Below, in pieces: positions 1 through 38,200 of a stretch of 64,000 bases of DNA. Source of the DNA: Tubulanus polymorphus (taxonomy: Eukaryota; Animalia; Nemertea); NCBI RefSeq assembly GCF_964204645.1, contig NC_134036.1:1426001-1490000 (forward strand), written 5' to 3'. Made by a program: the position numbers and the translations under genes. The stretch's first letter is position 1; every line of letters begins with the position of its first letter. Below the pieces are notes generated by a model. That model was not told the DNA's origin, searched no databases, and worked only from the letters and a program-made list of their open reading frames with translations.

Positions 1-133
1 TGACTGACAGCCATCATCAGGTGGAATGCTCAGCTATTCGTTGAAACTAATGACCTATCCGCGAACCGATCTTTGCACTTCTACTGATTTAGATATTGAA
101 ATTTCGCGTTTCAAACTTAATTTCTTCATTCAG

Positions 134-1187: not shown

Positions 1188-4100
1188 ATGTATCGTGAAA
1201 GAAACATCTTTCGTTTTTTGCTGTTGTTGATTCTATGTTTATTCATCACAAACACATCAGGTGAGTTAATCAATAATCGTTGGTTCCAGAGCTGTTGAAA
1301 ACGTAGAAATCGTAAATTGTACGATTTCAATCCATAAGAGAGCACCGATGATAACCAGAGAAAGAAGAGAATTATTGTTGGAGAACAGCATTTGGAGAAT
1401 ATTTTTGTAAAATAATCTTCTTTTTGTCATTTCAGCAAAATGTTTTGGGAAGAGTTGTACTGGTTGGTTGTGTCATTGCAGTAATACAGCTGTGGACCAA
1501 TGTCCAATCAAGGGTCAGAATATAGATGGCGCTTTAACGTGTCCTGATCCTAATACTGCATGTGAGTCTACAATAAAAATTCCATATCCCTGGACACCGC
1601 CAGGATGGACCGGACCAGCTTGTCAAATCGGTAAGTTTTCTGTATCAACTGTGGGTCAGGTCAAATATCACTGAACCCCGGATTTTCCCCAGATTAACGG
1701 TTTAACTCAACTAATCCGTCATATGAAGCGGCTTTTATTGAAATGAAAATTTTGAAAAAATAAAAGGGAAAAAAATAAAATGAATCATTTTTTTAGAAAT
1801 CCTACCTAATTCACGTAGATCCAAATGGCGACGTTTTCCGTATTAGGGAGCTTAGTCCGAAAAACGTAAAAATAGGCCCATGATCTGTGATTCTTTTTTA
1901 CTTTAAGAAATATCATTTTTTGAAAATACGAAATATCACCATCTGGATGTCATGAAATTATTTCGTGGCTTAAAGGACGCGAATATAGTTTTTTTAATTT
2001 TACGTACATAAGCATAGAATCGAGCTACTTTTTTGTTGATTTTAGGGTGACATTTTCGACTGATATTTATAGTAGCTTAGTTTCGGCGACTACGTAACCA
2101 AAGCTAAGAAATGAAATGATGGAAATAAAATATTTATTTTGAAAATTCTATTCTGCTCGTTTTGTAGGTAACGTGGCTCGCGGTAAAACAGGTACGATGT
2201 CATCCGTTTATTCCGACTCATACGGCGGTAGTAGATGTACAGATGGTCAAACGCTAGCTCACATTGCTTATCTCAGTTATAAGGATATGTGTCACACTAA
2301 TGAGGATCAAGACGCCTGGATTAGAATTGATCTTGGAACACAATACGTGGTACATAAAGTTACACTTTGGGATAGACCAGACGCGGCTGATTGCGGCGAC
2401 GCTGAGTGGAGTGAGTACAAATTATAAATGTTGATTATATCATTGATTATTTCGGTCAAATCTGAAAAAATAGAACTTTTAACTGGAAAAGTCTCGTTAG
2501 ATATAAATTCCGTCTAGTAGATGAAATATCTTCAAAACTAACCAATCATTGATGGATTCTATGAGATGAGTTGAAATATTGAACCCTACCGAAACATCGA
2601 ACTCTGAGTCATCAATAATTAATATCAATGGTTAATATCGTTTAACTCATATCTGATACAAAGAATACGTTAGAAAAAGTCTGGTTGAATATAACCCCGT
2701 TTTAGTTTAGAGATTTTCAAAATCTACCAATTGTTGATCGATTCAGGAACTAAATTCCGCACTGTTTCACACAGTTTTCAGTTACCTTTGACTCGAGATG
2801 AAAATTAAAAAATCTAGAGACAAGATTTTTAACCTGAACTGTGGAAATGTGCGTGGGCCATGAATAATTTGTTTTCCGTTCGACATCAATGTATCTGCGG
2901 TATTCATGGGCGACTCTCTTCAACTTGTTTTCACGAAGTTAAATCTGATTTTCCCCTAGAAAAACGTGCGCGCATGTGCATGGGGAGGTGGAGGAGTTAA
3001 AATAACCGGAAGTCAAGCGAACGTACTTCATGCACGGCCCCTTTACTTATTTTTTCAAAAGAACTTGAACAGAATTGTTTTGCTCCCAAAGCAATCTTCA
3101 ACTTCCCTGATTTCGTGCATTAATTTTGTTTTGTCGGAGTTAACTGCAATATTTCAAAGCTCCTTAATCTTTTCTCAGAAAAACGCGAACGCAACATGGA
3201 GATTCGAGTTGGAAATGAATATGGCACCAATACAAGTATTTCTACATCTAACCAGAAATGTGCTTACCAGGGCCCCGCTCTCTGTGGAACACATAAAACA
3301 TTATCATGCAGCCCAGGTCCTATAGTTGGACGATTCGTCACCGTTCAACACAAGAACATTGGTAAGGCAGAGGCTCTCGCACTGGCAGAAATAGAAGTTA
3401 TCGGGTTCAAATATATCGGTAAGTTTTACATGACTATATATATGTGTAAACTATAAAGAGTATGGAAATGGATTTTGCTTTTCTCGAAAATATTCAGTCG
3501 CTTGTATATAGAATTTACCCCCGAACGAAAAATTTTGAAATGAAAAGAAGTCTCCCTTTATTACCAAAATTTTGTTTTTAGCACCCATTCATTTATGGAT
3601 TTATTATTGTTAAAATTAGATCGATTTATAAAAATATTCAGTGACTTGTAATGAGAACATATTTCCGAAAGATCGAATGATTCATATTTTTCGTATCAAA
3701 TTTGAATTTCTGTTTAGCACCCGGTAGTTGCAGTAAGGGATCGAACTCATTTGGATGTATGATTGAATGTAGATGTTACAACAGTGAAAGTTGTAACTAT
3801 TTGAGTGGTATCTGTGAATCTGGCTGTTCACGGAATTACATCGGAAAGTGGTGCGAGTCAGGTATATTACACTGAATCATAGATTCCTGGGAATCTCACT
3901 TCCTATTCCCGAAATATAGTAACCAATATGAATCGAAAATGATACCAAGTCAAAAAAACCGAAAGTAAAAGATCCTTACCCTTTATTTTATTCAAATCAC
4001 CTGAAATTAACATCTCAGATTTCTTTTTCAGAATTGAAATCGTTTTCTCAATTAACAAAATCTGCGCTGACAGATAACAGTGTAAAAGTCAGTTGGACCG

Positions 4101-5035
4101 CTTACTCGGGTTCTGTAGTAGATTCAGGTCGTGGTACTGTCAGCGTTCAGTATCTAGTCGTTTATCGTAAAATATCAGAAAACACTTGGACTAATCAGGA
4201 AACTGCAGGAGTCCTTACACATCGCACAATTACTGGTTTAACTCCTAATACCGGGTATAACATAGCTGTTAGACTACAGAAATTAGAGAACGGTCAACTT
4301 ATATCAACTGCGAGTCTGACTAGTACAGTATTAACTTTGTGTGCAGGTAAAACCCCTCATTCTAATAAACTCTTAATCATCAATTCAAACACAGAATTGT
4401 GTTGAACATGTTTGTTTTACTGTAGATCCATTAAACGGTCCTAAAGGTGTTCGTGTGGTGTCCACAGCGGTTGAGAACAGTAACACGTGGCCCCAGACAA
4501 CCAATCTGATACTTACATGGACCGTAAGTGTGCCTCAACCAGAATCACATAAATTCACCTGGGCCCGGTTTTATAGACTAGTGTTACCTTCAACCCGGGG
4601 CTAACTTAATTTATTTTCTTACTTTATTAACTAATTCACCTGATGTTCATTTATATCTATATGACAAGGGAAGAAAATTTGACCTTCCCTTTCAGTGACA
4701 CATGATAAAAACATGTAGTGAATTATAATTATGTTGCAGGCTTTAACTGCTGCAGAGTTACAGTGTGACGTCACTAAAGCTGTTTATCAAGTCGAGTATA
4801 AACAACTGAACGGACAAACATGGACCACAACAGCGGCGCAACCTACCGGCCACACACTAACAGGACTAGAACCTGATACTGATTATGAAGTTAGAGTTGG
4901 TGTAAAGAATGACGTCACTCAGAAATTCATTTACACCAAACCTAAAAGTTACAAAACGTCGACTGCGGGTAATTCAATCCCACATTAGATATAGCCAAAA
5001 CGAGAAACTTGAATAAGAGTAAATGTAGTTGGCTC

Positions 5036-5118
<83 letters not shown>

Positions 5119-8100
5119 TTGGAGAACAGCATTTAGAGAATGTTTTTTGTAAAACAATCTTCTTTTGTCATTTCAGTAATATGTTTTGGGAAGAGTTGTT
5201 CTGGTTGGGAGTGTCATTGCAGTAATACAGCCGTGAACATATGTCCAATAAAGGGACAGAATATAGATGGCGCTTTAATGTGTCCAAATCCTAACACTGC
5301 ATGTGAGTCTTCAATAAAAACTCCGTATCCCTGGACATCACCAGGATGGACCGGACCAGCTTGTCAAATCAGTAAGTTTTCTGTATCAACTGTGGGTCAG
5401 GTCAAATATCACTGAACCCCGGATTTTTCCCAGATTAATGGATTAACTCAACTAATCCGTCATGTGAAGCGGCTTTTATTGAAATGAAAATTTTGAAAAA
5501 ATAAAAGGAAAAATAATAAAATGAATTATTTTTTTAGAAATTCTTCCTAATTCACGTAGATCCAAATGGCGACGTTTTCCGTATTAGGGAGCTTAGTCCG
5601 AAAAACGTAAAAATAGGCCCATGATCTCTGATTCTTTTTTACTTTAAGAAATATCATTTTTTGAAAATACGAAATATCACCATCTGGATGTCATGAAATT
5701 ATTTCGTGGCTTAAAGGACGCGAATATAGTTCTTTAATTTTACGTACATAAGCATAGAATCGAGCTACTTTTTTGTTGATTTTATGGTGACTTTTCGACT
5801 GATATTTATATTAGCTTAGCTTCGGAGACTATGTAACCAAAGCTAAGAAATGAAATGATAGAAATAAGATATTTATTTTGAAAATCCTATTCTGCTCGTT
5901 TTGTAGGTAACGTGGCTCGCGGTAAAACAGTTACGATGTCATCCGTTTTGTCAATCCCTACGTTTACCGCTAGTAAATGTACAGATGGTCGGACGGTAAC
6001 TAAACCATATAAAGATCTATGTCACACTCGTTATGATCAAAACGCCTGGATTAGAATTGATCTCGGAACTCAATACGTGGTACATGAAGTTACACTGTGG
6101 GATAGAACAGACGCGGCTGGTTGCGACCTGCCGTGGAGTGAGTACAAATTATTAATGTTGATTGATCATCTAGGCCAAATATGATAGAAAAAAATATATA
6201 ACTTCAGCTCGAAAAGCCTGGTTGAATATAAACCAAGTTTAGATGAGTGATTTTTTCAGAAAAGTTTGACTCGAGATGAGTTGAAACTTTGAACTCTACC
6301 GGAATATCGAACTCTGAGTCATCAATAATCAATAATCTGTAAATAAAGTCAGTTCGACAACAATGTGTCTGTGGTATCCATGGATGACAACTTCATGAAA
6401 AATACGTTATTGGAAAATTTTGAATCAACTTTTTCAAACGTGTCAACATTTTCAGTCGATAACTATAAATTTGTGTTAGGGGCCGTGCGCCTGTCGAAAA
6501 CAATGAATTTATTTTTAGATTTGTTTTTCACAGAATTTGAATAGAATTGCTCTGCACCCAAAGCAATCTTCAGCTTCCCGGATGTCGTGCATTATTATTT
6601 GTTTTCATCTTTCAAAGCTTCTTAATTCTTTTTCTAAGAAAAACGTTCGCGCAACCTGGAGATTCGAGTTGGAAATGAATATGGCACCAATACAAGTATT
6701 TCTACATCTAACCAGGAATGTGCTTACCAGGGTCCCCCTCTCTGTGGTAGGCATAAAACATTAGCGTGCAGCCCAGGTCCTATAGTTGGACGATACGTCA
6801 CCGTTCAACACAAGAACATTAGTAATGCAGAGTATCTCAACCTGGCAGAAATAGAAGTTATCGGGTTCAAATATATCGGTAAGTTTTACATGACTATATA
6901 TATGTGTAAACTATAAAGAGTATGGAAATGGATTTTGCTTTTCTCGAAAATATTCAGTGACTTGTATATAGAATTTACCCCCGAACGAAAAATTTTGAAA
7001 TGAAAAGAAGTCTCCCTTCATTACCAAAATTTACCCATTCATTTAAGGATTATATTATTGTTAAAATTAGATCGATTTTCATAAAAATATTCAGTGACTT
7101 GTAATGGGAATGTATTTCCGAATGTTCAAACAGTTCATATTTTCGTATCAAATTTGAATTTCTGTTTAGCACCCGGTGGTTGCAGTAAGGGATCGAACTC
7201 ATTTGGATGTATGATTGAATGTAGATGTTACAACAATGAAAGTTGTAACTATTTGAGTGGGATCTGTGAATCTGGCTGTTCACAGAATTACATCGGAAAG
7301 TGGTGCGAGTCAGGTATATTACACTGAATCAGAGATTCCTTAGAATCTCGGTCCCAACTGTAAACGACTGAAAGTAAAGATCCTTGTTCATCTAAAACTA
7401 ACATCAATCTATTTTCAGAATTTAAGTTGTTTTCGCTATTAACAGAATCTGCGCTGACAGATAACAGTGTAAGAGTCGGTTGGACAGCTTACTCGGGTTC
7501 TGTAGTAGATTCAGGACGTGGTACTGTCAGCGTTCTGTATCAAGTCGTTTATCGTAAGATATCAGAAAAGACTTGGACTAATCAGGAAACTGCAGGAGTC
7601 CTTACACATCACACAATTACTGGTTTAACTCCTTATACCAGGTATAAGATAGCTGTTAGACTACAGAAATTAGTGAACGGTCAACTTATATCAACTGCGA
7701 GTCTGACTAGTATGACTAGTACAGTATTAACTTTGTGTGCAGGTAAAACCCCTGATTCTAATAAACTCTTAAACTGTAAATGAGTAAAACATGTTGCTGT
7801 CGTCATCAAGTAGATGTCAATTCACAGAATCGCATTACTTAATTTGTCTGTGGTGTTTATTTCAGTACCAGGACCTCCCGCTTCTCTCGACTACTCATTC
7901 ACAAGGGATACATTGAAAACTACATTGACATGGACTTTACCAAACAGTCCAAATTGTGATGTCATCAATTATTGGGTAGGAATTAACTTGTCCTGACCAT
8001 TAGAGGGCACCATCTGCGCTATACTGTAACGTGTCCCTATCTGTTTTCAGCTCACGTGTGAACCCATCAGTACAACTTCCACAACACCTTTAACAGACAT

Positions 8101-11100
8101 AAAAACAATCAACAAACCTAAAATCAAAGGCTCCATCACAACTTTAGACATAACGACGTCACTGATACCTTTTACTCAATACAACTGTTCAATGTTTGCC
8201 TCGAATAGTAAAGGGGAAGGGTCACCTGCCAGTGTTAGCTTTTGGTCAGGTGAGTAATTTGAACCCAATGACCTCAAGTATTCATTGATGTCACTTGTCA
8301 ACATTGTCACTTACTGATATTTCAGGTGAAATAACAATTCCCCTACTGGTTGTCAAGAAAGCAGCGATAACAAACACGACTGTTACACTTCAAATAACAC
8401 GTGTTAATACTGGAAACATTACGTAAGTGTCCTCTTATTTTCATCTATAAATAATGCATGATCTTATAAAACAATTTTTCTCTGATTTTCAGCGGTTACG
8501 AGGTGATCGTCAAGAAACATGATGGACCAATCAGCCGTCGCCGGAAGCGTGCAGTCAACCAATCACAGTACGTCTCGTACGGAGAAGCTAAACAGCGAGG
8601 ATTATCAGTTTATATTACTGCAGTTCTACCACCGAAAGTGCCCTCTGAGTTTATAGTTGGTGATACACGTGACTATTGTGGTTACTTTAATGCTCCTCTA
8701 GAAACTGGAAAATCTTACAGTTTTATTTTAGGAATCGTTGTCAATTATAACGGAGTGAGTTCATCTTGTCTTTGAATGTGAATTGTAGTTTCCAATTTGG
8801 AGGTGACTCTAGCCATTTTTTGGGGATTTTTCAGGAAACGTTTCGGCATTATCCACCAATAGAACAGCAAGAGAGAATCACTGTTCAAGCATCGTCTAGT
8901 AAGGCAGGGATAATAGGTGGCGTTGTGACAGTTGTTCTAATACTGTTATTGGTTGCTGTTGCTCTATATATTGTTTGGAGGTATGAGTAAATAGTGGCGA
9001 CCTCTATAGTCCAAGGCAAATCATTTGACAATCGCCCAATGCCCCTATTCTCACAAAAGTTCCCCCTCATTCAGTTACCCACTATATGGACGCTTTAACT
9101 TTTCAGACGCGGTGGATTCAAAATTAAACAAGCATCGAACAATGCAGAAATATCCATGGGGAATATTTCACCTTCTGATAAACCTATTGAAATACCTTTG
9201 GCGAGAGAAGAAGCAGAGGCTGTTTATGTGAATTGTCCTAAATCACCGAGACAAGAAAATACAGCTAGTGCAAATGCTGCATTTTCAAGAGGTTTGTCTC
9301 AAGACCGTGAGGTTTTGTAAAGTTGTAGCCTATTTTAACATTTAACACTATGATTCCTCTCCCTATAGTAAGCTCCGCGTATTTCAATATCTATGACGAT
9401 CCGAATGCTGTAGATGAAACGCAAGATGGCGAGGATCATCACTACGAAATCGCTTCTAAAGGCGCTACTATGATTTGTGACCTGTTGGGAGAGACCTTGA
9501 TGAAGACCTCTGATGAGTGGAAGAATATGAATGAAGAATTTCAGGTAAAATTGCTGGGAGGTTGCGACTGCTCGTGGGTAAGACATGTGATCATGTTCTG
9601 GATCTATTTTTTCTTTAGAGTGTTCTCAAATTCAGACGAGGATTGAGCGCCTGCGCTGAGACAGTGGAGAATCTTGAGAAAAACAGGTTTCCAAACATAT
9701 TGGCCTGTAAGTATTGCCTGGTCATTATATAGACATGAGTTCTGTCGTAAATACAAGAGTTGCCTTGTGAAACATCTCTATTGAGTTTCATTGACTTTGA
9801 GTGGTTTTTTCTAGATGATTCGACTAGAGTTGTTCTGGAACAAATCGGTGAAGATCCAACATCAGATTACATCAATGCCAATTATATTCGGGTGATAAAT
9901 CAATCCCTCTCTGCTCTTGAAAATGTTGCCACGTCCTCCTATTGTATATAAACGGAAATTCTGAATTTAATTTTCAGGGACTAACTGGTCATGTAATATG
10001 TATTGCTTGCCAGGGTAAGTCTCATGATTCAATTGTTGCGTGTTACTTGTGCGCTCACTCATCTAACTTGTTCTTTCAGCTCCATTGCTATCTACAATCA
10101 ATGACCATTGGCGGATGATCTGGCAAGAGAAATGTCCAGCTATCATTGTACTTACTGTTCTGACTGAAGGACAAGGCAAAGATAAGAAGGTTGCAAAAAT
10201 ACTCTAAGATGCTGAAGCGTAAACAGGCAAAATTTAGAAAAATAAGTACCGTTGATTTTTAACTTGCAGGTGAAGTATCATTTATATTGGCCAACAAAAC
10301 TGAACACGAAAGGTCGATATGGAGATATAACAGTAAAAGTTGCAAAGAAAATGGAAAAACACACTGAGCCTCCGGCTGCCGTACATTTCTTGTCCATTAC
10401 AAAGGTAATGATCATGTCATTGCTTTATCATGAGTGACCTAGTGTTGGTATTTCTGCTATCTATAAGCTTGGTTCAGATATCGATTTTAATAGACTCTCC
10501 CGATAAGTAACATTTCATTTATTTTATAGCGTGGCCACAAACAAGCACATAATCTATTAGTGTTTCACTATCGAGGATGGCCGGATCATGGTGTACCGTT
10601 CCCGGCTTTATCTGTTGTTCGTATGCAACAGTTCATCAAACAGCGTCTTACCGACCCGGATCAGGGACTTGTGCTGGTTCATGGCAGGTAAATTAATTTG
10701 AAATCGTCCAGTCCTTTACAGTTAAGGACACGTTTAGATATGTTATTGTTTGTGTTCTCAGTGCTGGTGCTGGAAGGACGGGTTGTTATATCGCAACGGA
10801 GCAGCTTCTTGAGAAAGCCAAGAAAGATGGACTTGTTAACGTATTCGACATGTTTAGGAAATTACGACAACAAAGACCAGAAATGATCCAAAATATGGTA
10901 AATCTTAATAAAGTTACTGCCTCTCATTTCACGTTTCCAAAATGGAAAACTTCAACGTGTTCCTTTATTACTATCTACTTCAGAAACAGTACATTCTCGT
11001 GCACCAGATTCTACTGGAGGAACTGATACTGGGACCAGTGGCATACACGACCACGAGTTTCAGAGAATCATACGAGGAAAGAAAGGCAACGCGACCAGTA

Positions 11101-12550
11101 TCTAAAAACGTGTCTGATAAAATAGAGGAACAATTTCTTGTACGTATTAAGATCAGCCAAAATGAGATGAAGGGTTTTGGATAACAAACAGATGGCAGCA
11201 ATGAATCCATTGACCCAGATAAACTAGATTTCAATTTTTTTCCTTGGTTTGGTTTTGAAGAAAATAATTACCCAATGCGTTGTTTTCTGATGCAGGTTTT
11301 GAAGGCATCGATTCCGATTCAGGACGAGGAATCACTAGCAGTGGCCAAACTACTCAACAATGTTAACAAGTCCCGATACAAAGACATCCTTCCCGAGGCA
11401 CAGTATCAACCGCAACTCTCACATAAAGGGTTCATCAATGCTTCATTTGTGCACGTGAGTTTGATTCTGAATTAATAGCTGTCCGTGGAATATCTGGTGG
11501 AGGGGGGCATTAATCCTCGATAATCTTCAGTTGAGATATCGATAAGTTATAAGAATCTGATTGAAATACTTTCCTTTTTACAGACGATCACAGATAAAAA
11601 CGTGTTTATAGCAACACAAAGTCCAATGGCAAATACTATTACTGACTTCTGGCAAATGATCTTTGACTATAACTGTGAAATTATTGTGATGATGCATCAA
11701 GAATATCCACAAGATCCGGTAAGGTGTATTCCTAGTCTAGCATCTAGTATACATAGGTCTGCTTTGTAGGTATCTTTTTCCAGAATACATCTTCTGATTT
11801 TAGACATATGCAAGTTACTGGCCTGCAGCTGGAAGCATCAAATGCAGTCCTTTTACAATCACTGTGGAGGAAGTTTCATTGCTCTGTAAGACCATCGTTC
11901 GCCGGGATTTGATCCTCAAAAAACAGAATGTATGTTGAGTTGTTTCGGTAGCTACTGTACAGAGAAATATGGCTGCATTTTTCGGAATTTCCTTCGACAT
12001 TGCTATTTACTATGACCTGATCAGATCAATTGTATTTCTTTGATTTCACAGGAATCGCATCAGATTCGTCAGATCCAGTTTTTAGGATGGCCTGAGGATG
12101 AGTCGGTTCCTAATTTACAACATCTATTCGAGTTTGTGAATCTAGTTACAAGAGAACACGTGACCAGTCCTATTGTTGTACATTGCATGTTCGTATCTTA
12201 GCAACATCAGTCAATTATTCAAAACAATATCACATATTCTATCGATTATGCAAATTTTACAGGGACAGCACAACGAGAGCAGGGTTATTTTGTGCGGCAT
12301 TTGAACTGATCACCAAGGCGCCATCTAGCGAACAAATCGATATTTATCACTGTATACAAAAACTACGAATGACTCGACCTCAATTCATTCCAAATTTGGT
12401 AAGAAATTAATCGATTTTCTTTGTATTTTCACGAGTTATTTTATTGATGTATTTTTCTTGTTTTCGTATTCATAGGAACAGTACAAGTTTCTACACGATC
12501 TGGTGATATTCTATTTACAAGGATTCGACACTTATGTGAACCTTAGTTAG
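1188..12550 (+). CDS. FTLD-EGF-FN3 receptor-type protein tyrosine (pseudo)phosphatase, copy A (two lectin modules, 34 exons, about 1836 aa)
   Basis: Manual splicing gives one continuous frame. Signal peptide 1188-1260 (MYRERNIFRFLLLLILCLFITNTS); Cys-rich 1436-1630; FTLD 2168-2410+3179-3418; EGF 3718-3861; FN3 4032-4346, 4426-4523, 4740-4968. Second module 5177-5371, 5907-6137, 6639-6878, 7170-7313, 7419-7742. FN3 7866-7975, 8051-8249, 8326-8422, 8493-8754 (RRRKR); TM 8835-8980; JM 9107-9291, 9369-9544; D1 9619-11139 (8 exons: KNRF, DYINAN, WPDHG, HGSAGAGR); D2 11296-12398; last exon 12476-12550 (..FDTYVNLS*). Exon sum is 5511 nt, divisible by 3. Confidence 0.88.
2168..3418 (+). CDS. F-type lectin (fucolectin, F5/8-C-like fold) domain A1, split over two exons
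   Basis: NVARGK..MSS..CTDG..CHT..WIRIDLG..V.LWDR.D ... IRVG..NQKC..C..GRFVTV..LAEIEV. The H-x26-R-x-D fucose-binding motif spacing is exact. Confidence 0.85.
5038..5116. repeat. (AT)n microsatellite in the intron at the module-1/module-2 junction of gene A
   Basis: About 39 perfect AT units; orthologous tract at 35222-35281. Confidence 0.98.
5907..6878 (+). CDS. F-type lectin domain A2 (two exons)
   Basis: Same framework as A1 with different loops. The second exon uses an AAG acceptor (6636-6638) instead of CAG. Confidence 0.82.
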
Positions 12551-15632: not shown

Positions 15633-16620
15633 ACAATTTTTGTAGCCTAAAATGCGAATCTTTGTAGATAGATCTTTACTGAAAGGAGGGGTATAGACCA
15701 CGGACTTTAAATTAACTTAGGTTAAGCTCAGCAGAAATGAGAAACAAGGTACGAATTTTTAGCCAGTGTAAATTAAAGCTTATTCGGTTGACCCAGTTTT
15801 TTATTTCCAATTGTTGAAGTTTCTGAAAAAGCTTGTCTGGTAGGCTATCATAGAACCGAAGGTACATGTATTCTATCATAGTGATTACATATGGCCAATG
15901 GGTTCGTTTTCCCCGTTAACGATCCTAAACTGACCACTAGTAGCCCCTAGACATCACAGTGTTATCATCCATGATATTTGTTTGTATACTATTTCTATTA
16001 AAGGCTTTGTGCGGTTACAGTATGTATAGGAAGGTAAGGATTAGCACCGACATTTTGTGGGTCGATTCAGACTCTGAATTCAGTTTTCATTGGTTTAAGT
16101 GACAGTGGCAGTTAAGGACCACCATACCGGTATTGTTGATAATAGTTAATTCTCAGAGGCAGCATATTAATAGTTTTGGAAACACTGATACGTGCGTTTA
16201 GTTAATATAATCCTGAAGCCGGGTCGTGCTACAGATTTAATTCTACATGCTCATAATCTCGATCGCGGTTTAACTGTTTACAAAACGGACTAGAATATCA
16301 AACGTCTTGTCCACTCACAGCGGTACCTGCGATATATTCTAAATCAGTGTTCATCTTCATTACAGAAGTGTTTGCCAATGATGTCGGTGTTGTTGCTAAT
16401 GACGCAGTGCACAGGAATATATGGTAAATAAAATCTACTAGGTTTTCGCAATGTCGTTTGGGAAATGGCAAACGGCTATCTTAGAATTTCCACTTGTAAA
16501 TTGGTAATTTTGTTAATTGTTTGTTAATTATTTCTAGGACAGCAGCAGAACTGTATAGTATTGCTGTGTGCGTTGGGCTTTACAAAGCAAATCCATGTCA
16601 GTAGTGATATCTATTTTCAG

Positions 16621-16897
16621 TTCCACCCGAATTCATTGTGCTGACTGAATTTCCAAACGGTCAAGTTGTCCAAGGCACATCGAAAACTCTGACATGTAAA
16701 ACTGACTCCAGTAACCCAGAGTTTTCAATTGTCTGGGCGTACAGATATGGACAAATGTTTCACACAACCCTGCAATCAATCATAAACCTGGACCTCACAG
16801 TGGACGGGTATCTACTAGTAGTTTGGTAGTTACAACCGATAAGGATAAAAATGGGAGGCAATACAGATGTACTGATATATATATATTAAGGAAGTAA
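16621..16897 (+). pseudogene. Ig-domain exon remnant of the Ig-TM gene (13-nt frameshift; about 1.95-kb deletion fuses it to the gene's last exon)
   Basis: VPPEFIVLTEFPNGQVVQGTSKTLTCKTDSSNPEFSIVWAYRY... then frameshift, ...NGRQYRC. After 'agatgtactg' the sequence jumps via 'atatatatatatt' to 'aaggaagtaatgatagg' (equivalent to 719 and 31168). Confidence 0.8.
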
Positions 16898-23200: not shown

Positions 23201-24971
23201 CGGGTTGTTATATCGCAACGGAGCAGCTTCTTGAGAAAGCCAAGAAAGATGGACTCGTTAACGTATTCGACATGTTTAGGAAATTACGACAACAAAGACC
23301 AGAAATGATCCAAAATATGGTAAATCTTAATAAAGTTACTGCCTCTCATTTCACGTTTCCAAAATGGAAAACTTCAACGTGTTCCTTTATTACTATCTAC
23401 TGCAGAAACAGTACATTCTCGTGCACCAGATTCTACTGGAGGAACTGGTACTGGGACCGGTGGCATACACGACCACGAGTTTCAGAGAATTATACGAGGA
23501 AAGAAAGGCAACGCGTCCCGTATCTAGAAACGTGTCTGATAAAATAGAGGAACAATTTCTTGTACGTATTAAGATCAGCCAAAATGAGATGAAGGGTTTT
23601 GGATAACAAACAGATGGCAGCAATGAATCCATTGACCCAGATAAACTAGATTTCAATTTTTTTCCTTGGTTTGGTTTTGAAGAAAATAATTACCCAATGC
23701 GTTGTTTTCTGATGCAGGTTTTGAAGGCATCGACTCCGATTCAGGACGAGGAATCACTAGCAGTGGCCAAACTACTCAACAATGTTAACAAGTCCCGATA
23801 CAAAGACATCCTTCCCGAGGCACAGTATCAACCGCAACTCTCACATAAAGGGTTCATCAATGCTTCATTTGTGCACGTGAGTTTGATTCTGAATTAATAG
23901 CTGTCCGTGGAATATCTGGTGGAGGGGGGCATTAAGCCTCGATAATCTTCAGTTGAGATATCGATAAGTTATAAGAATCTGATTGAAATACTTTCCTTTT
24001 TACAGACGATCACAGATAAAAACGTGTTTATAGCAACACAAAGTCCAATGGCAAATACTATTACTGACTTCTGGCAAATGATCTTTGACTATAACTGTGA
24101 AATTATTGTGATGATGCATCAAGAATATCCACAAGATCCGGTAAGGTGTATTCCTAGTCTAGCATCTAGTATACATAGGTCTGCTTTGTAGGTATCTTTT
24201 CCAGAATACATCTTCTGATTTTGGACATATGCAAGTTACTGGCCTGCAGCTGGAAGCATCAAATGCAGTCCTTTTACAATCACTGTGGAGGAAGTTTCAT
24301 TGCTCTGTAAGACCATCGTTCGCCGGGATTTGATCCTCAAAAAACAGAATGTATGTTGAGTTGTTTCGGTAGCTACTGTACAGAGAAATATGGCTGCATT
24401 TTTCGGAATTTCCTTCGACATTGCTATTTACTATGACCTGATCAGATCAATTGTATTTCTTTGATTTCACAGGAATCGCATCAGATTCGTCAGATCCAGT
24501 TTTTAGGATGGCCTGAGGATGAGTCGGTTCCTAATTTACAACATCTATTCGAGTTTGTGAATCTAGTTACAAGAGAACACGTGACCAGTCCTATTGTTGT
24601 ACATTGCATGTTCGTATCTTAGCAACATCAGTCAATTATTCAAAACAATATCACATATTCTATCGATTATGCAAATTTTACAGGGACAGCACAACGAGAG
24701 CAGGGTTATTTTGTGCGGCATTTGAACTGATCACCAAGGCGCCATCTAGCGAACAAATCGATATTTATCACTGTATACAAAAACTACGAATGACTCGACC
24801 TCAATTCATTCCAAATTTGGTAAGAAATTAATCGATTTTCTTTGTATTTTCACGATTTATTTTATTGATGTATTTTTCTTGTTTTCGTATTCATAGGAAC
24901 AGTACAAGTTTCTACACGATCTGGTGATATTCTATTTACAAGGATTCGACACTTATGTGAACCTTAGTTAG
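17264..24971 (+). CDS. FTLD-EGF-FN3 receptor-type PTP (pseudo)phosphatase, copy B (single lectin module, 27 exons, about 1350 aa)
   Basis: Signal 17264-17336; Cys-rich 17512-17703; FTLD 18171-18401+18988-19215; EGF 19516-19665; FN3 19791-20114, 20281-20390, 20467-20665, 20743-20839, 20912-21173; TM 21254-21402; JM 21529-21713, 21790-21965; D1 from 22040 (CAT GGC AG at 23101-23108); last exon 24897-24971. No frameshift seen. Confidence 0.86.
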
Positions 24972-28451: not shown

Positions 28452-28457
28452 TAATAG

Positions 28458-28488
<31 letters not shown>

Positions 28489-28500
28489 GTATAATATTAA
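28452..28500. repeat. (AAT)n microsatellite
   Basis: AAT run that replaces about 125 bp present in the paralogous spacer (16041-16165). Confidence 0.85.
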
Positions 28501-28955
28501 TAGTTTTGGAAACACTGGTACGTGCGTTTAGTTAATATAATCCTGAAGCCGGGTCGTGCTACAGTGCTACTTTAATTCTACATGCTCATAATCTCGATCG
28601 CGGTTTAACTGTTTACAAAACGGACTAGAATATCAAACGTCTTGTCCACACACAGCGGTACCTGCGATATATTCTAAATCAGTGTTCATCTTCATTACAG
28701 AAGTGTTTGCCAATGATGTCGGTGTTGTTGCTAATGACGCAGTGCACATGAATATATGGTAAATAAAATCTACTAGGTTTTCGCAATGTCGCTTGGGAAA
28801 TGGCAAACGGTTATCTTAGAATTTCCACTTGTAAATTGGTAATTTTGTGAATTGTTTGTTAATTATTTATAGGACAGCAGCAGAACTGTATAGTTGTGCT
28901 GTGTGCGTTGGGCTTTACAAAGCAAATCCATGTCAGTAGCGATATCTATTTTCAG

Positions 28956-31177
28956 TTCCACCCGAATTCATTGTGCTGACTGAATTTCCAAACGGTCCAG
29001 TTGTCCAAGGCACATCGAAAACTCTGACTCCAGTAACCCAGAGTTTTCAATTGTCTGGGCGTACAGATATGGGGTATCAACATGGACAAATGTTTCACCC
29101 AACCCAGCAATCAATCATAAACCTGGTCCTCACAGTGGTCGGGTATCTACTAGTAGTTTGGTAGTTACAACCGATAAGGATAAAATGGAAGGCAATACAG
29201 ATGTACTGCTTATCAGAACGGTGTGTCTTTTCATGTGGTCACCAACTCCACGACACTGTCAGTATTGTGTAAGTGACGTTTATAACACCTTAAACAACAT
29301 CATTTTTCTTTTCTATTTTATCAAACTTTTTTTTTCTATATATAGGTTATATTATATTTCTAAAATATTCTTCTTTCCTGTAAAATGAAAAGTAGATGTT
29401 TCATATTCTATAGATTCGGCAGATTCTGTTTCGCTGACTCCAGTAAACTCTGTCGTAAGGGAAGGCGGCTCGATTCGGTTTAACTGTGCAGCAACTGGTG
29501 GAAATCCTGATAGTTTCACTTTCGTATGGCAATTCTCAACTGTTTCGGGTTTCTGGAAATCAATCGGATCCACGAATGATTATTTAGCCCTAGATAATGT
29601 ATCAAGAACTGATTCTGGGGCTGGTTGCATAGTCATGGCTTAGACTTAAGACTAGTCTAAGACCAACTTAGTTCTATAGCCAATCTAACAATTTAAGACC
29701 GGTCTTATGATTTAAGACCATTTTTGGACTTAAGTCATGACTGTGCAACTGGCCCCAGGACAATATAGATGTAATGCGACCAATACAGGAGGTTCTACTT
29801 TCAGTAATATCGCTTCTGTCGATGTTCAATGTAAGTAACCAGCCAATAAAGAGTTTTCCAGTTTCTAGGCACCATTATCCTGTACCCATTTATAAGGACT
29901 CTCAGATTATGGATGAATACAGTATTTAGAATGATTCTGATAATGTGACCAAAAACTTTTTCATTTTTCACAGATGCACCAACGCTCTCAGAGAAACTGA
30001 AACCTGTAGCCGCAAAAATAGGGGAAAGCGTTAGATTTATGATAGGCTACTATGCAAATCCGCAAGCGACGAGTTTAAACTGCATCCACGAGTTCATATA
30101 CAGAACTAATTGGTTCAGATCAGATATAATGTGCTGGGAAGTTACGATCGAATCAGTCCAGGCGTCTGATTATGGATCTCATTCGTGTCAACTGAAGAAT
30201 TCGATCGGTAGCCTGGATATTATTACATTGGATATCCTTAAAACTGGTAATTACTGTTCCGAATATTCTCATCGCTAATATTCCCCATTAATATCCACTT
30301 GCGGCTAACTAACGGCTGTGCAATACAAAAACAAAAAATGGCGAAAGTTTGTGTTTTGTAAGATGCTCAGCTAAATGAAGAAATCCCACACTTCGAATTT
30401 AAAATTATACGATCAAATTTATATTATGAAACCACAACGTTTCGGCTGTTGACTAACAGCCATCATCAGGTGGAATGCTCAGCTATTCGTTGAAACTAAT
30501 GACCTATCCTCGAACCGATCTTTGCACTTCTACTGATTTAGATATTGAAATTTCGCGTTTCAAACTTAATTTCTTCATTCAGTCGATGACAATGCATGGA
30601 CCGTCACGTCTTTAGTCCCGCTGATAATTGCTGGAGTGGTTCTTGGTAGCATTGCGTTCATTCTGATCGTAATATTTCTACTCGTGTATCCGATAAAACA
30701 ACTCAGAAACAGAGGAAATAAATCACGTGGAATGTAAGTTTTTATGGAATCATTTTGTTGTTGTCGTCCCTTTAATTGTTTCGCACCAAATGCCACCTTC
30801 TTTTTAAATGACAGAAAACTCATCAATAACAGATCACTAATACATAACTCATCAATTACAGATTAGTTTGATTTGGTTCGAATCCCATTAGTCCTTCAAA
30901 CCGACTATTTCGGTACCGTCTATTCAAAAGGTATTTGCTGAACCCAGAAATTTGAAGAATTGAAAAAATCGAGTTAAAATCGTCACTCTTTTATTTCAGT
31001 AAAACTAAAGATTTAACGACAGGTAAAAATTATTCATATAGAAATATGAATTTATTTTCTAGACTTCTAAATATTGAATGTTATTATTTTGACAATTTCA
31101 TCATTTTTAAACGTATTTTTATTATTACAGTTTATCGAAACAATGACCCGGATTCACGTATATATACAAGGAAGTAA
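28956..31177 (+). pseudogene. Ig-superfamily single-pass receptor pseudogene (at least 3 Ig domains + TM + short tail; nephrin/kirre/CD22-like architecture)
   Basis: Ig exon 28956-29268 has 13-nt and 1-nt deletions. Ig exon 29414-29830 (..IRFNCAATGGNP..W..LALDNVSRTDSG[MITE]QYRCNATN..) has an in-frame stop inside the insertion. Ig exon 29974-30246 (..DYGSHSCQLKNSIG..); TM exon 30583-30733; last exon 31131-31177. Confidence 0.8.
29618..29755. mobile_element. 138-bp PIF/Harbinger-like MITE inserted in an Ig exon
   Basis: Imperfect TIRs of about 26 bp (gggctggttgcatagtcatggctta / taagtcatgactgtgcaactggccc) flanked by CTG and CAG. Removing the element plus one CWG restores D-S-G-Q-Y-R-C. Confidence 0.85.
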
Positions 31178-31634
31178 TGATAGGAAAAAATGATCCATGA
31201 TTTTAATGATTTTAATTGGTGATCAATTAGCTTTGTGGTCACCCTATTCAGCTGATGCCTTTTTTCTGATACGGGGAAAACCAATGGTTTGTCTCATTTT
31301 ACACGAAAGGGGTGTCATGTCTATCGTGCTAAGGATTTAAGTGGAGTTAATCCGTTAACACTATGAATTAAACTGTTTTTTTTCTTGTTTTGATAATTTG
31401 TTCTTTTTACTTTCAAAGATTTTTTTTCTTTTATTTATTTTTTTCCTACTCAGGTAACGGCGACCCTTGATGTTCTGTTCTGGCCTCCTTCCTAACCTCC
31501 CCCACAGAGCAAAATAAACTAGCAAATCTGAAATTTGTTTAAACTTCCTTTAAAATGATTTATTTGAAAATCAAAAGGAAGTTAATTGCATAGATATGTG
31601 AGCGATATCATATTGCGTCATTCAGACAGACAAA

Positions 31635-34600
31635 ATGTATCGTGAAAGAAACATCTTTCGTTTTTTGCTGTTGTTTATTCTATGTCTATTCATCACAAAC
31701 ACATCAGGTGAGTTAATCAATACTCATTGGTTCCAGAGCTGTAAAAAATGCGGAAATCGTAAATATTGTATTGTATTTCAATCCATAAGAGAGCACCGGT
31801 GATAACCAGAGAAAGAAGAGAATTATTGTTGGAGAACAGCATTTGGAGAATATTTTTGTAAAATAATCTTCTTTTTGTCATTTCAGCGAAATGTTTTGGG
31901 AAGAGTTGTACTGGTTGGGAGTGTCATTGCAGTAATACAGCTGTGGACCAATGTCCAATAAGAAGTCGGAATACAGATGGCGCTTTAACGTGTCCAAATC
32001 CCAATTCTGCATGTGAGTCTACAATAAAAACTCCGTATCCCTGGACACCACCAGGATGGACCGGACCAGCTTGTCAAATCGGTAAGTTTTCTGTATCAAC
32101 TGTTTCTGCTCCAGTAAACCGGGATCAGGTCAAATATCACTGAACCTCGGATTTATATCAAATTAACGGATTAACTCCATGAAAGCCTTTACAAAAATAA
32201 ATCTTAAAGAATTAGGAATGAATGATGTAAATTTCATTAGATTTATCTCAGATTAACCGAATAACACTAAAACTAATCCGTATACGGATTAACGTCACTA
32301 ATCCATAAGCGGGAAAAAAATTTATTGGTAAAAATATCATAGATTTATGAAACTTCCGGGAACTGTCAACGAACTGAGATCAACTCGCGATGAAATAATC
32401 AAATTATTTCATCGCGTAAAGAAAAAAATGTTAGTTTTGTTTAATTCTAGTTGAAATTGTGAAATAACTTTGAATCAATTTGTTTTTGTTCGTTTTGAAA
32501 ATTCGTGAAATAATTCAAATCTCTTATTCACAAAATGTGTTTTGTAGGAAACGTGGCTCGTGGTAAAACAGTTGCAATGTCATCCATTCTCAGGATTGAA
32601 AGTGACTATCGCGGTAGTAAATGTACAGATGGTCAGATGGTAAGTGGAATGTGTCACACTAAAGATAATCAAGACGCCTGGATTAGAATTGATCTCGGTG
32701 CTCAATACGTCGTACATGAAGTTACACCTTGGGATAGAAGAGACGTGACTGGTTGCACCGATAACCCGTGGAATTCGTGGAGTGAGTACAAATTATTAAT
32801 GTTGATTGATCATCTAGGCCAAATCTGATAGAAAAAATATATAACTTCAGCTCGAAAAGCCTGGTTGAATATAAACCAAGTTTAGATGAGTGATTTTTTC
32901 AGAAAAGTTTGACCCGAGATAAGTTGAAACTTTGAACTCTACCGAAATATCGAACTCAGAGTCAACAATAATCAATAATCTGTAAATAAAGTCAGTTCGA
33001 CAACAATGTGTCTGTGGTATCCATGGATGACAACTTCGTAAAAAATACGTCATTGGAATTTTGAATCAACTTTTTCGACGTGTCAACATTTTCAGTCGAT
33101 AACTATAAATTTGTGTTAGGGGCCGTGCGCCTGTCGAAAACAATTAATTTATTTTTATATTTCTTTTTCAAAGAGTTTGAACAGAATTGTTTTGCACCCA
33201 AAGCAATCTTCAGCTTCCCGGATGTCGTGCATTATCATTTGTTTTCATCTTTCAAAGCTTCTTAATTCTTTTTCTCAGAAAAACGTTCGCGCAACCTGGA
33301 GATTCGAGTTGGAGATGAATATGGCAATGATACAAGTATTTCTACATCTAACCAGAAATGTGCTTACCATGGCTTACCCCCTCTCTGTGGTACACATAAA
33401 ACATTAGCATGCAGCCCAGGTCCTATAGTTGGACGATACGTCACCGTTCAACACAAGAACATTGGCTACGCAGAGTCTCTCGCACTGGCAGAAATAGAAG
33501 TTATCGGGTTCAAATATATCGGTAAGTTTTACATGACTATATATATGTGTAAACTATAAAGAGTATATGGAAATGGATTTTGCTTTTCTCGAAAATATTC
33601 AGTGACTTGTATATAGAATTTACCCCCGAACGAAAAATTTTGAAATGAAAAGAAGTCTCCCTTTATTACCAAAGTTTGGTTTTTAAGCACCCATTCATTT
33701 ATGGATTTATTATTGTTAAAATTAGATCGATTTTCATAAAAATATTCAGTGACTTGTAATGGGAATATATTTCCGAAAGATCGAACGATTCATATTTTTC
33801 GTATCAAATTTGAATTTCTGTTTAGCACCCGGTGATTGTAGTAAGGGATCGAACTCATTTGGATGTATGATTGAATGTAGATGTTACAACAGTGAAAGTT
33901 GTAACTATTTGAGTGGTATCTGTCAATCTGGCTGTTCACAGAATTACATCGGAAAGTGGTGCGAGTCAGGTATATTACACTGAATCATAGATTCCTGGGA
34001 ATCTCACTTCCTATTCCCGAAATATAGTAACCAATATGAATCGAAAATGATACCAAGTAAAAAAAAACCGAAAGTAAAAGATCCTTACCCTTTATTTTAT
34101 TCGATTCACCTGAAATTAACATCTCAGATTTCTTTTTCAGAATTGAAATCGTTTTCTCAATTAACAAAATCTGCGCTGACAGATAACAGTGTAAAAGTCA
34201 GATGGAGAGCTTACTCGGGTTCTGTAGTAGATTCAGGACGTGGTACTGTCAGCGTTCAGTATCTAGTCGTTTATCGTAAAATATCAGAAAAGACTTGGAC
34301 TAATCAGGAAACTGCAGGAGTCCTTACACATCGCACAATTACTGGTTTAACTCCTAATACCGGGTATAAGATAGCTGTTAGACTACAGAAAATAGTGAAC
34401 AATCAACTTATATCAACTGCGAGTCTGACTAGTACAGTATTAACTTTGTGTGCAGGTAAAACCCCTCATTCTAATAAACTCTTAATCATCATTTCAAACA
34501 CAGAATTGTGTTGAACATGTTTGTTTTACTGTAGATCCATTAAACGGTCCTAAAGGTGTTCGTGTGGTGTCCACAGCGGTTGAGAATAGTAACACGTGGC

Positions 34601-35217
34601 CCCAGACAACCAATCTGATACTTACATGGACCGTAAGTTTGCCTCAACCAGAATCACATAAATTCACCTGGGCCCGGTTTTATAGACTAGTGTTACCTTC
34701 AACCCGGGGCTAACTTAATTTAATTTCTTACTTTATCAACTAATTCACCTGATGTTCATTTATATCGATATGACAAGGGAAGAAAATGTGACCTTCCCTT
34801 TCAGTGACACATGATAAAAACATGTAGTGAATTATAATTATGTTGCAGGCTTTAACTGCTGCAGAGTTACAGTGTGACGTCACTAAAGCTGTTTATCAAG
34901 TCGAGTATAAACAACTGAACCGACAAACATGGACCACAAAAGTGGCGCAACCTACCGGCCTCACACTAACAGGACTAGAACCATATACTGATTATGAAGT
35001 TAGAGTTGGTGTAAAGAATGACGTCACTCAGAAATTCATTTACACCAAACCTAAAAGTTACAAAACGTCGACTGCGGGTAACTTAAAAATGAATGACGAG
35101 ACCAGTTTAAACGCAAGAAATCCCACATTAGATATAGCCAAAACGAGAAACTTGAATAAGAGTAAATGTAGTTGGCTCATAGGCATTAGCCGAAACATTG
35201 CACAAATACATTTGCTC

Positions 35218-35283
<66 letters not shown>

Positions 35284-38200
35284 TTGGAGAACAGCATTTA
35301 GAGAATGTTTTTTGTAAAACAATCTTCTTTTGTCATTTCAGTAATATGTTTTGGGAAGAGTTGTACTGGTTGGGAGTGTCATTGCAGTAATACAGCAGTG
35401 GACATATGTCCAATAAAGGGTCAGAATATAGATGGCGCTTTAACGTGTCCAAATCATAATACTGCATGTGAGTCTACAATAAAAACTCCGTATCCCTGGA
35501 CACCACCAGGATGGACCGGACCAGCTTGTCAAATCGGTAAGTTTTCTGTATCAACTGTTTCTGCTGCAGTAAACCGGGGTCAGGTCAAATATCACTGAAC
35601 CTCGGATTTATATCAAATTAACGGATTAACTCCATGAAAGCCTTTACAAAAATAAATCTTAAAGAATTAGGAATGAATGATGTAAATTTCATTAGATTTA
35701 TCTCAGATTAACCGAATAACACTAAAACTAATCCGTATACGGATTAACGTCACTAATCCATAAGCGGGAAAAAAATTTATTGGTAAAAATATCATAAATT
35801 TATGAAACTTCCGGGAACTGTCGACGAACTGAGATCAACTCTTAATTATTTCATCGCGTAAAGAAAAAAATGTTAGTTTTGTTTAATTCTAGTTGAAATT
35901 GTGAAATAACTTTGAATCAATTTGTTTTTGTTCGTTTTGAAAATTCGTGAAATAATTCAAATCTCTTATTCACAAAATGTGTTTTGTAGGAAACGTGGCT
36001 CGTGGTAAAACAGTTGCAATGTCATCCATTCTCAGGATTGAAAGTGACTATCGCGGTAGTAAATGTACAGATGGTCAGATGGTAAGTGGAATGTGTCACA
36101 CTAAAGATAATCAAGACGCCTGGATTAGAATTGATCTCGGTGCTCAATACGTCGTACATGAAGTTACACCTTGGGATAGAAGAGACGTGACTGGTTGCAC
36201 CGATAACCCGTGGAATTCGTGGAGTGAGTACAAATTATTAATGTTGATTGATCATCTAGGCCAAATCTGATAGAAAAAATATATAACTTCAGCTCGAAAA
36301 GCCTGGTTGAATATAAACCAAGTTTAGATGAGTGATTTTTTCAGAAAAGTTTGACCCGAGATAAGTTGAAACTTTGAACTCTACCGAAATATCGAACTCA
36401 GAGTCAACAATAATCAATAATCTGTAAATAAAGTCAGTTCGACAACAATGTGTCTGTGGTATCCATGGATGACAACTTCGTAAAAAATACGTCATTGGAA
36501 TTTTGAATCAACTTTTTCGACGTGTCAACATTTTCAGTCGATAACTATAAATTTGTGTTAGGGGCCGTGCGCCTGTCGAAAACAATTAATTTATTTTTAT
36601 ATTTCTTTTTCAAAGAGTTTGAACAGAATTGTTTTGCACCCAAAGCAATCTTCAGCTTCCCGGATGTCGTGCATTATTATTTGTTTTCATCTTTCAAAGC
36701 TTCTTAATTCTTTTTCTCAGAAAAACGTTCGCGCAACCTGGAGATTCGAGTTGGAGATGAATATGGCAATGATACAAGTATTTCTACATCTAACCAGAAA
36801 TGTGCTTACCATGGCTTACCCCCTCTCTGTGGTACACATAAAACATTAGCATGCAGCCCAGGTCCTATAGTTGGACGATACGTCACCGTTCAACACAAGA
36901 ACATTGGCTACGCAGAGTCTCTCGCACTGGCAGAAATAGAAGTTATCGGGTTCAAATATATCGGTAAGTTTTACATGACTATATATATGTGTAAACTATA
37001 AAGAGTATGGAAATGGATTTTGCTTTTCTCGAAAATATTCAGTGACTTGTATATAGAATTTACCCCCGAACGAAAAATTTTGAAATGAAAAGAAGTCTCC
37101 CTTTATTACCAAAATTTTGTTTTAAGCACCCATTCATTTAAGGATTATATTATTGTTAAAATTAGATCGATTTTCATAAAAATATTCAGTGACTTGTAAT
37201 GGGAATATATTTCCGAATGTTCAAACAGTTCATATTTTCGTATCAAATTTGAATTTCTGTTTAGCACCCGGTGGTTGCAGTAAGGGATCGAACTCATTTG
37301 GATGTATGATTGAATGTAGATGTTACAACAGTGAAAGTTGTAACTATTTGAGTGGTATCTGTGAATCTGGTTGTTCACAGAATTACATCGGAAAGTGGTG
37401 CGAGTCAGGTATATTACACTGAATCAGAGATTCCTTAGAATCTCGGTCCCAACTGTAAACGACTGAAAGTAAAGATCCTTGTTCATCTAAAACTAACATC
37501 AATCTATTTTCAGAATTTAAGTTGTTTTCGCTATTAACAGAATCTGCGCTGACAGATAACAGTGTAAGAGTCGGTTGGACAGCTTACTCGGGTTCTGTAG
37601 TAGATTCAGGACGTGGTACTGTCAGCGTTCTGTATCAAGTCGTTTATCGTAAGATATCAGAAAAGACTTGGACTAATCAGGAAACTGCAGGGGTCCTTAC
37701 ACATCACACAATTACTGGTTTAACTCCTTATACCAGGTATAAGATAGCTGTTAGACTACAGAAATTAGTGAACGGTCAACTTATATCAACTGCGAGTCTG
37801 ACTAGTATGACTAGTACAGTATTAACTTTGTGTGCAGGTAAAACCCCTCATTCTAATAAACTCTTAAACTGTAAATGAGTTAAACATGTTGCTGTCGTCA
37901 TCAAGTAGATGTCAATTCACAGAATCGCATTACTTAATTTGTCTGTGGTGTTTATTTCAGTACCAGGACCTCCCGCTTCTCTCGACTTCTCATTCACAAG
38001 GGATACATTGAAAACTACATTGACATGGACTTTACCAAACAGTCCAAATTGTGATGTCATCAATTATTGGGTAGGAATTAACTTGTCCTGACCATTAGAG
38101 GGCACCACCTGCGCTATACTGTAACGTGTCCCTATCTGTTTTCAGCTCACGTGTGAACCCATCAGTACAACTTCCACAACACCTTTAACAGACATAAAAA

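Follow-up and report, generated by a model that had tools for sequence, protein, structure and literature searches.

We analysed a window of 64,000 nt from the 268-Mb assembly of the nemertean (ribbon worm) Tubulanus polymorphus (G000:C12:1426001-1490000; positions given without a contig count from its first letter). The window contains five F-type lectin domains (FTLDs), spread over three receptor-type protein tyrosine phosphatase (PTP) genes, A, B and C. Sequence differences among these domains are concentrated in loops assigned to the complementarity-determining regions (CDR1-5) of eel agglutinin, and diversifying selection very likely acts on CDR1, CDR3 and CDR4. In addition, loops and whole exons have been exchanged between paralogs. 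Diversified invertebrate immune receptor families are characterised by clusters of related genes whose ligand-binding domain recombines and is under positive selection, and such a cluster is found here. With moderate confidence, we read the domains as the ligand-facing parts of young, lineage-specific receptor-type PTPs that form a diversified non-self recognition receptor family.

Variation, selection and recombination in the lectin-domain loops

Each FTLD is encoded by two exons with AG/GT borders (Table 1). An earlier note on this DNA had described four FTLDs (A1, A2, B and C) with hypervariability confined to five loops. All 20 loop strings that it quoted are present at their places in the window, and the four sequences are indeed distinct; the domain count is five, as C exists at both 32548-33521 and 35990-36963, and the two copies match at every nucleotide of their two FTLD exons (0 differences). 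At the protein level, the four distinct domains are 12% identical in CDR1, 20% in CDR2, 30% in CDR3 and 32% in CDR4; outside the loops they are 91% identical in the exon-1 framework, 93% in the exon-2 framework and 91% in the EGF exon.

Confinement to the five loops does not hold. CDR5 is only mildly variable (70% identity in the window, 71% family-wide) and is exceeded by an unlisted non-CDR loop after 'IRVG' (67% in the window, 54% family-wide), which carries 4- and 8-residue deletions. The 'CAY..LCG' loop contains a 1-residue insertion, and the upstream Cys-rich exon contains a small variable patch with indels. Variation is concentrated in, rather than confined to, the five loops: the CDR columns make up 33% of the alignment and 67% of the variability, a share matched by 0 of 168 mask rotations.

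The family provides 27 close copies of FTLD exon 1, 24 of them distinct, and 25 copies of exon 2, all in-frame and free of stops, as had been claimed for the indels. Frame preservation itself was rejected as evidence of positive selection, since any working gene has it. Among 23 domains there are 22, 21, 19 and 18 different sequences of CDR1, CDR2, CDR3 and CDR4, respectively. Loop lengths range from 4 to 11 residues in CDR1 and from 6 to 15 in CDR2, which varies mainly by length.

Site tests on exon 1 gave a 2dL of 178 for M1a/M2a (95-105 without gap columns), 105 for M7/M8 and 100 for M8a/M8, and the control exons (exon 2, Cys-rich, EGF, FN3, and the first and second PTP domains, D1 and D2) gave 6-26. 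We set the standard site tests aside as proof of selection, because in simulation they were inflated by nothing more than rate heterogeneity and recombination: when loops evolved fast but neutrally, with a separate tree for each segment, M1a/M2a statistics reached 71 and a false omega reached 3.3. Region-wise estimates were therefore used instead, from codon models written in Python in which each region has its own synonymous rate (dS). Identical copies were collapsed ahead of all tests, and one genome was analysed.

The ratio of the nonsynonymous rate (dN) to dS is 2.98 in CDR1 (2.78 without gap columns; p 4e-4), 3.79 in CDR3 (p 6e-3) and 2.61 in CDR4 (p 3e-4), and elsewhere 0.39 in the framework, 0.83 in the bottom loop, 0.43 in the Cys-rich exon and 0.79 in the EGF exon. 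The cleanest signal comes from CDR3 and CDR4, in which dS is about that of the framework (1.2-1.8 vs 1.5) and dN is about 8-fold higher. A tree-free test gave p values of 0.007, 0.40, 0.047 and 0.010 for CDR1 to CDR4. Furthermore, in 99 runs of a null with neutral loops, matched region rates and four segment-specific trees, the pooled omega had a mean of 1.04 and a maximum of 1.56, vs 1.94 observed; for CDR1, CDR3 and CDR4 together, a subset chosen afterwards, the null reached at most 1.8, vs 2.82 observed. Replacement distances in the loops (0.28-0.59) exceed intron distances (0.10-0.11), and the two youngest comparable pairs differ by about 25 replacement vs 1 silent loop changes. Diversifying selection, with dN/dS above 1 in the loops, had been proposed for all five; it is borne out for CDR1, CDR3 and CDR4, but not for CDR2 (1.13) or for CDR5 as a whole (1.07), in which one site is flagged and selection acts at a site or two at most.

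Synonymous divergence is itself uneven, lying below the prediction of a uniform-rate model in the framework and above it in CDR1. The dS of CDR1 and CDR2 is raised 3-4 times (about 4-fold in CDR2), pointing to older loop haplotypes, misalignment or local slippage.

Gene conversion, which the earlier note did not mention, shapes the loop pattern. The PHI test gives p 0.001 for either FTLD exon, and the trees of the four exons are mutually rejected. Recombination or gene conversion has moved loops and entire exons from one paralog to another, also by way of the intron within the domain. Specifically, A2 matches the paralog at C12:1414729 exactly in exon 2 and the EGF exon, yet exon 1 shows 48 differences over 222 bases, the change of partner lying in the intron between the two FTLD exons; the two C domains are identical in both FTLD exons and differ in the flanking Cys-rich and EGF exons; and identical CDR2, CDR3 or CDR4 haplotypes are common to otherwise different domains. 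At the end of one FTLD exon 1 outside the window (L003, C12:1106238), a 9-bp duplication over the splice donor creates two in-frame donors, which would permit two CDR4 lengths from one gene; the longer one is used in the RefSeq model.

Fold of the lectin domain and position of the loops

The AlphaFold2 model of domain B (pLDDT 94, the model's confidence score) has the F-type jelly-roll fold. Its top structure matches are 1K12, eel agglutinin (AAA), and 3CQO (Z 21-22.5, root-mean-square deviation 1.4-1.9 Å), with 1K12 as the best (TM-score 0.83, Z 21.3, 1.9 Å over 140 residues). A single-sequence fold of the Cys-rich, FTLD and EGF stretch was of low confidence (pLDDT 37).

In the alignment to 1K12, His52, Arg79, Asp81, Arg86 and the Cys108-Cys124 pair fall on conserved residues. 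The His...Arg-x-Asp...Arg/Lys triad of F-type lectin domains is accordingly present: the His is found in 26 of 27 copies, the Arg, 26 residues from it as in the His52-Arg79 pair of AAA, in all 27, the Asp in 25 of 27, and the second Arg, aligned with Arg86, in all 25 copies having exon 2. The calcium motif h-h-D-G-x keeps its DG, with flanks C-T/V/A and Q/R/K, and the Glu matching AAA Glu147 is also kept. The spacer from the Asp to the last Arg is 10-14 residues in all complete copies vs the canonical 4, and it is also long in an active outparalog (P0250), so these are FTLDs of an atypical rather than canonical motif.

Published work on eel agglutinin places Glu26 and His27 in CDR1, Phe45 and Tyr46 in CDR2, and Arg79 and Asp81 in CDR4 (PMC5712786). 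These placements, together with the 1K12 alignment, fix the assignments of CDR1, CDR2 and CDR4 made in the earlier note. The limits of CDR3 and CDR5 were drawn from topology: the CDR3 assignment follows from the order of the loops, and the loop before the last strand is what we take to be CDR5. The non-CDR loop after 'IRVG' would sit at the opposite end of the barrel, judging from the strand topology of the model and from PMC5712786.

Receptor genes, phosphatase tails and the gene array

Genes A, B and C share one plan, and the splice joins used here are those of their RefSeq models. A signal peptide is followed by one or two modules, each comprising a Cys-rich exon, two FTLD exons, an EGF-like exon and FN3, and then by further FN3, a PTPRU-type stalk with a furin site, a transmembrane (TM) segment, a Tyr-rich juxtamembrane part and two PTP domains. 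In gene A, two such modules precede FN3, the PTPRU-type juxtamembrane FN3, TM, D1 with its Cys changed to Gly, and D2. Pfam reports fn3, Fn3_PTPRU and two Y_phosphatase matches, and the furin site of gene A is RRKR; the Cys-rich exon gave no match in a Pfam search. With signal peptide, FN3 stalk, furin site, TM and tandem PTP domains, the proteins are R2B-like receptor-type PTPs (RPTPs). Neither the MAM nor the Ig (immunoglobulin) domain of the vertebrate R2B ectodomain was found by Pfam search of these receptors, and the database names 'kappa-like/T-like' are similarity labels only. The closest database protein (XP_074661320.1) is from Tubulanus polymorphus, database searches found no close relatives of the ectodomain outside this species, and the Atlas neighbours of the family are molluscan EGF/FTLD receptors.

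The catalytic Cys of the HCxxGxGR motif of D1 is absent from all three window genes. His-Gly replaces His-Cys in D1 of 14 of 14 PTP genes read in the two main clusters, with WPD kept. The Gly-bearing genes form one clade (SH-aLRT 99), whose sister group is a pair of Cys-bearing paralogs located at 0.27-0.31 Mb. The D1 Cys is kept in P0016, P0172 and P0250, the last being an active-type, more distant FTLD-RPTP on another chromosome, and a further paralog, P0174, is without PTP domains and ends in a short Tyr-rich tail. Gly-bearing D1 and D2 are under purifying selection (dN/dS 0.38 and 0.29), indicating that the tails are kept for something. From their sequence, the Gly-type tails are predicted to be inactive as phosphatases and may bind phosphotyrosine.

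The D2 exon acceptor of gene B, at about 24221-24223, reads GG rather than AG, and the RefSeq model (1205 aa) ends in that intron; a near-identical twin of gene B at C12:1386883 is intact. The juxtamembrane cytoplasmic exons (9107-9544 and paralogs) carry several Tyr motifs (YxN, YDDP) that differ between copies. Two distant FTLD-RPTP paralogs, P0181 and P0182 (C12, about 9-10.6 Mb), keep the D1 Cys and have Trp for the P-loop Arg, likely a second, independent inactivation.

The array extends upstream of the window, with 11 gene starts at C12:1.319-1.469 Mb and four at 1.076-1.120 Mb. Further family genes lie at 0.27-0.32 Mb, at 2.5 Mb and on C7, C9 and C10; the PTP exons of these genes are known through RefSeq proteins or search matches. 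Two family members, at C12:1345225 and C12:1094139, are broken, one being without FTLD and TM exons and one without everything past the FN3 exons, which indicates birth-and-death turnover of the family. A decayed remnant of another receptor gene (44950-45660, plus strand; TM, juxtamembrane and last-exon fragments) marks the array end.

An Ig-domain single-TM gene (Pfam Ig_3, I-set) stands before most receptor genes and is co-duplicated with them (28690-31177, 16355-16880 and 133-719, plus strand); the frameshifts or truncations seen in its copies make them look like pseudogenes. An insertion of about 140 bp with terminal inverted repeats, resembling a miniature inverted-repeat transposable element, interrupts an Ig-TM exon at about 29617-29758 and brings a stop, and this reading break is present in 6 of 6 full Ig-TM copies. 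Just past the array lies an acetylcholinesterase-like open reading frame of the carboxylesterase family (50075-51412, minus strand; Pfam COesterase 1.6e-132), and the window also holds a tRNA-Thr(AGT) gene (49816-49888, plus strand). Tandem repeats occupy 53239-53736, 56809-57177, 59199-59517 and 60231-61029, with units of 109, 121, 108 and 81 bp; the 81-bp array, of about 10 copies, has a 299-codon stop-free frame that is probably a by-product of its period.

Table 1. Receptor genes, lectin-domain exons and loops, and D1 substitutions in the window
Feature	Position	Strand	Remarks
Gene A, receptor-type PTP	1188-12550	+	RefSeq XP_074661537.1; open 1836-aa frame; exon map, Pfam, match to RefSeq model
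Gene B, one-module receptor	17264-24971	+	RefSeq XP_074661693.1, model ends inside D2
Gene C, two-module receptor	31635-42650	+	RefSeq XP_074661690-2; both FTLDs identical
FTLD A1 exon 1	2168-2410	+	CDR1 2206-2226, CDR2 2248-2289, CDR3 2299-2313, CDR4 2377-2406
FTLD A1 exon 2	3179-3418	+	non-CDR variable loop 3214-3255, CDR5 3352-3381
FTLD A2 exon 1	5907-6137	+	CDR1 5945-5968, CDR2 5990-6019, CDR3 6029-6043, CDR4 6107-6133
FTLD A2 exon 2	6639-6878	+	identical to exon 2 of paralog C12:1414729
FTLD B exon 1	18171-18401	+	CDR1 18209-18229, CDR2 18251-18283, CDR3 18293-18307, CDR4 18371-18397
FTLD B exon 2	18988-19215	+	non-CDR loop 19023-19052 with 4-residue deletion; CDR5 19149-19178
FTLD C1 exon 1	32548-32781	+	CDR1 32586-32612, CDR2 32634-32651, CDR3 32661-32675, CDR4 32739-32777
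FTLD C1 exon 2	33279-33521	+	CDR5 33455-33484
FTLD C2 exon 1	35990-36223	+	identical to C1
FTLD C2 exon 2	36721-36963	+	identical to C1
Cys-rich exon preceding each FTLD	1436-1630, 5177-5371, 17512-17703, 31887-32081, 35342-35536	+	
EGF-like exon following each FTLD	3718-3861, 7170-7313, 19516-19665, 33826-33969, 37265-37408	+	about 90% identical
Gly codon replacing D1 catalytic Cys, gene A	10683-10685	+	HGSAGAGRT
Gly codon replacing D1 catalytic Cys, gene B	23104-23106	+	
Gly codon replacing D1 catalytic Cys, gene C	40767-40769	+	

Readings of the family and known systems

If the family serves non-self recognition, the conserved pocket of each receptor would hold a terminal sugar of fucose- or galactose-like type and the receptor's own loops would read the neighbouring sugars, so that the family would cover a shifting range of glycans, most likely those of parasites or microbes. 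A conserved basic pocket in a rim of variable loops would be expected of receptors that share one terminal sugar and differ in their subterminal specificity; the part given to the loops in ligand specificity follows from their position. More tentatively, and by analogy with STYX and PTPRU, the Gly-type tails might signal as phosphotyrosine-binding scaffolds or compete with active paralogs, acting together with the Tyr motifs near the membrane as paired active and inactive receptors. Several observations weigh against this account. The eel aromatic residues of the fucose methyl pocket (Phe45/Tyr46 equivalents) are not conserved, the Cys50-Cys146 bond is absent and CDR4 exceeds the canonical motif by 6-10 residues, which leaves the binding of fucose uncertain. 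Two new bonds probably form among four other invariant cysteines. Neither CDR2 nor CDR5 rises above neutrality, and in seven close pairs pooled (56 replacement and 12 silent changes) the replacement excess is not significant (p 0.10). Moreover, a like loop pattern serves fertilisation in oyster bindin (PMC5712786).

Within-species recognition of self and non-self, either of gametes, as in oyster bindin, or in allorecognition, would have the loops chase variable self glycans rather than pathogens. In oyster bindin, the FTLDs are under positive selection around the pocket and recombine within an intron that interrupts the domain midway (PMC5712786), and exons are swapped in this way here too; R2B-like RPTPs act at cell contacts (PMC7320164), and the Tubulanus receptors carry the PTPRU-type FN3. 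Bindin is, however, secreted, acrosomal and encoded by few genes, whereas more than 20 paralogous signalling receptors in one genome have the layout of invertebrate immune clusters, and we consider this explanation rather unlikely. A non-adaptive origin, in which surface loops tolerate substitutions and slippage indels while gene conversion keeps the framework young, so that the loops then look hypervariable, is in our judgement improbable. It accords with the low framework and high CDR1 synonymous divergence, the raised dS of CDR1 and CDR2, the inflation of site statistics by the neutral fast-loop null alone, and the near-neutral dN/dS of CDR2, CDR5 and the bottom loop. Against this, three loops stay at 2.6-3.8 with their own dS, CDR3 and CDR4 have dS at framework level, and the matched null falls short of both the pooled and the subset values.

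A neuronal or epithelial code for cell identity or wiring, with variable ectodomains giving selective adhesion, would suit the fact that RPTPs of this class are adhesion receptors and that several nemertean lectins are expressed in nerve tissue (PMC9835746). An arms race accounts better for the fast turnover, the broken copies and the positive selection seen between very young paralogs. Database searches found no close relatives in other species, and we give such a code little credence. It is very improbable that much of the array consists of uncollapsed haplotypes and that the 'paralogs' are alleles. Over a stretch of about 6 kb, gene B is 99-100% identical to the C12:1386883 gene, as is the 5′ half of gene C to the C12:1370657 gene; but tracts of identity change partner from one part of a gene to the next, the tests used each identical sequence once, a few copies are affected at most, and the alleles of one diploid could not account for 24 distinct exon-1 sequences. 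Finally, the family could be an antibody-like germline repertoire on a lectin scaffold: its loops, free in length and in sequence and shuffled through gene conversion, would extend past fucose to varied glycan or protein epitopes, with signals passed on by pairs of active and catalytically dead phosphatase tails. This receptor logic is not known to have been described in any animal and is unlikely here; a high level of allelic variation, or even somatic variation, would enlarge the repertoire.

The non-self recognition reading matters because fucolectin-domain RPTP clusters are parasite-resistance candidates from genome-wide association studies (GWAS) in snails, and how such receptors gain specificity is at issue. 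With two dozen domains at about 90% framework identity, whose differences lie almost entirely in the pocket loops, loops could be tied to ligands directly, and the natural pairing of active and Cys-to-Gly tails offers a test of how pseudophosphatase receptors signal. Variable CDR loops (eel), selection with intron recombination (bindin) and clustered fucolectin-domain RPTPs at resistance loci (Biomphalaria) are each already known, and earlier knowledge of loop variation and selection in F-type lectins limits the surprise. A literature search for FTLD-RPTPs in nemerteans found no paper, and we did not find a description of length-variable selected loops combined with amplified pseudophosphatase receptors and active paralogs in a nemertean.

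EGF/fucolectin-like RPTP gene clusters lie at the Biomphalaria schistosome-resistance loci SudRes1 (PMC12297450) and LG5R subgroup 1C (PMC13712769), and GWAS tie them to parasite resistance (PMC12297450, PMC13712769). Like these MEGF/galactose-binding (fucolectin-like) RPTPs, the Tubulanus receptors are clustered single-pass paralogs with an EGF-like and fucolectin-like ectodomain, tandem PTP domains, extracellular diversity, copy-number change and a co-duplicated neighbour gene. The Tubulanus family differs in that its ectodomain includes FN3 repeats and a stalk of PTPRU type, the gene duplicated alongside is an Ig-TM pseudogene, the catalytic Cys is missing from most D1 domains, and selection has been measured at the level of loops. 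One mollusc FTLD-PTP in the tree (Ostrea, P0287) groups apart from the Tubulanus family, on a long branch with open forks, so that the two may or may not share an origin.

The F-lectin repeats of oyster sperm bindin likewise show positive selection around the fucose pocket and gain new loop combinations by recombination in a mid-FTLD intron, and bindin has alternative isoforms (PMC5712786). Bindin is an acrosomal adhesion protein of few genes that is diverse within species, whereas Tubulanus diversity lies among paralogous TM signalling receptors, whose loops differ greatly in length and whose triad hardly varies. The eel fucolectins AAA and eFL-1 to 7 share the fold, the triad and the x26 spacing, and their isoforms vary most in CDR1 and CDR2 (PMC5712786); they are secreted, keep their loop lengths and strictly conserve CDR4, in contrast to the CDR1 and CDR2 length ranges and the long, variable and selected CDR4 of Tubulanus. 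At the phosphatase end, PTPRU, a receptor of the R2B class, has two inactive domains and acts as a competitor of active paralogs (PMC7320164); we liken the Gly-type tails to it from sequence alone. STYX carries the same change of catalytic Cys to Gly as Tubulanus D1 (PMC8269279). Unlike PTPRU and STYX, which are single conserved genes, the Gly form in Tubulanus is the amplified majority of a family with variable ectodomains.

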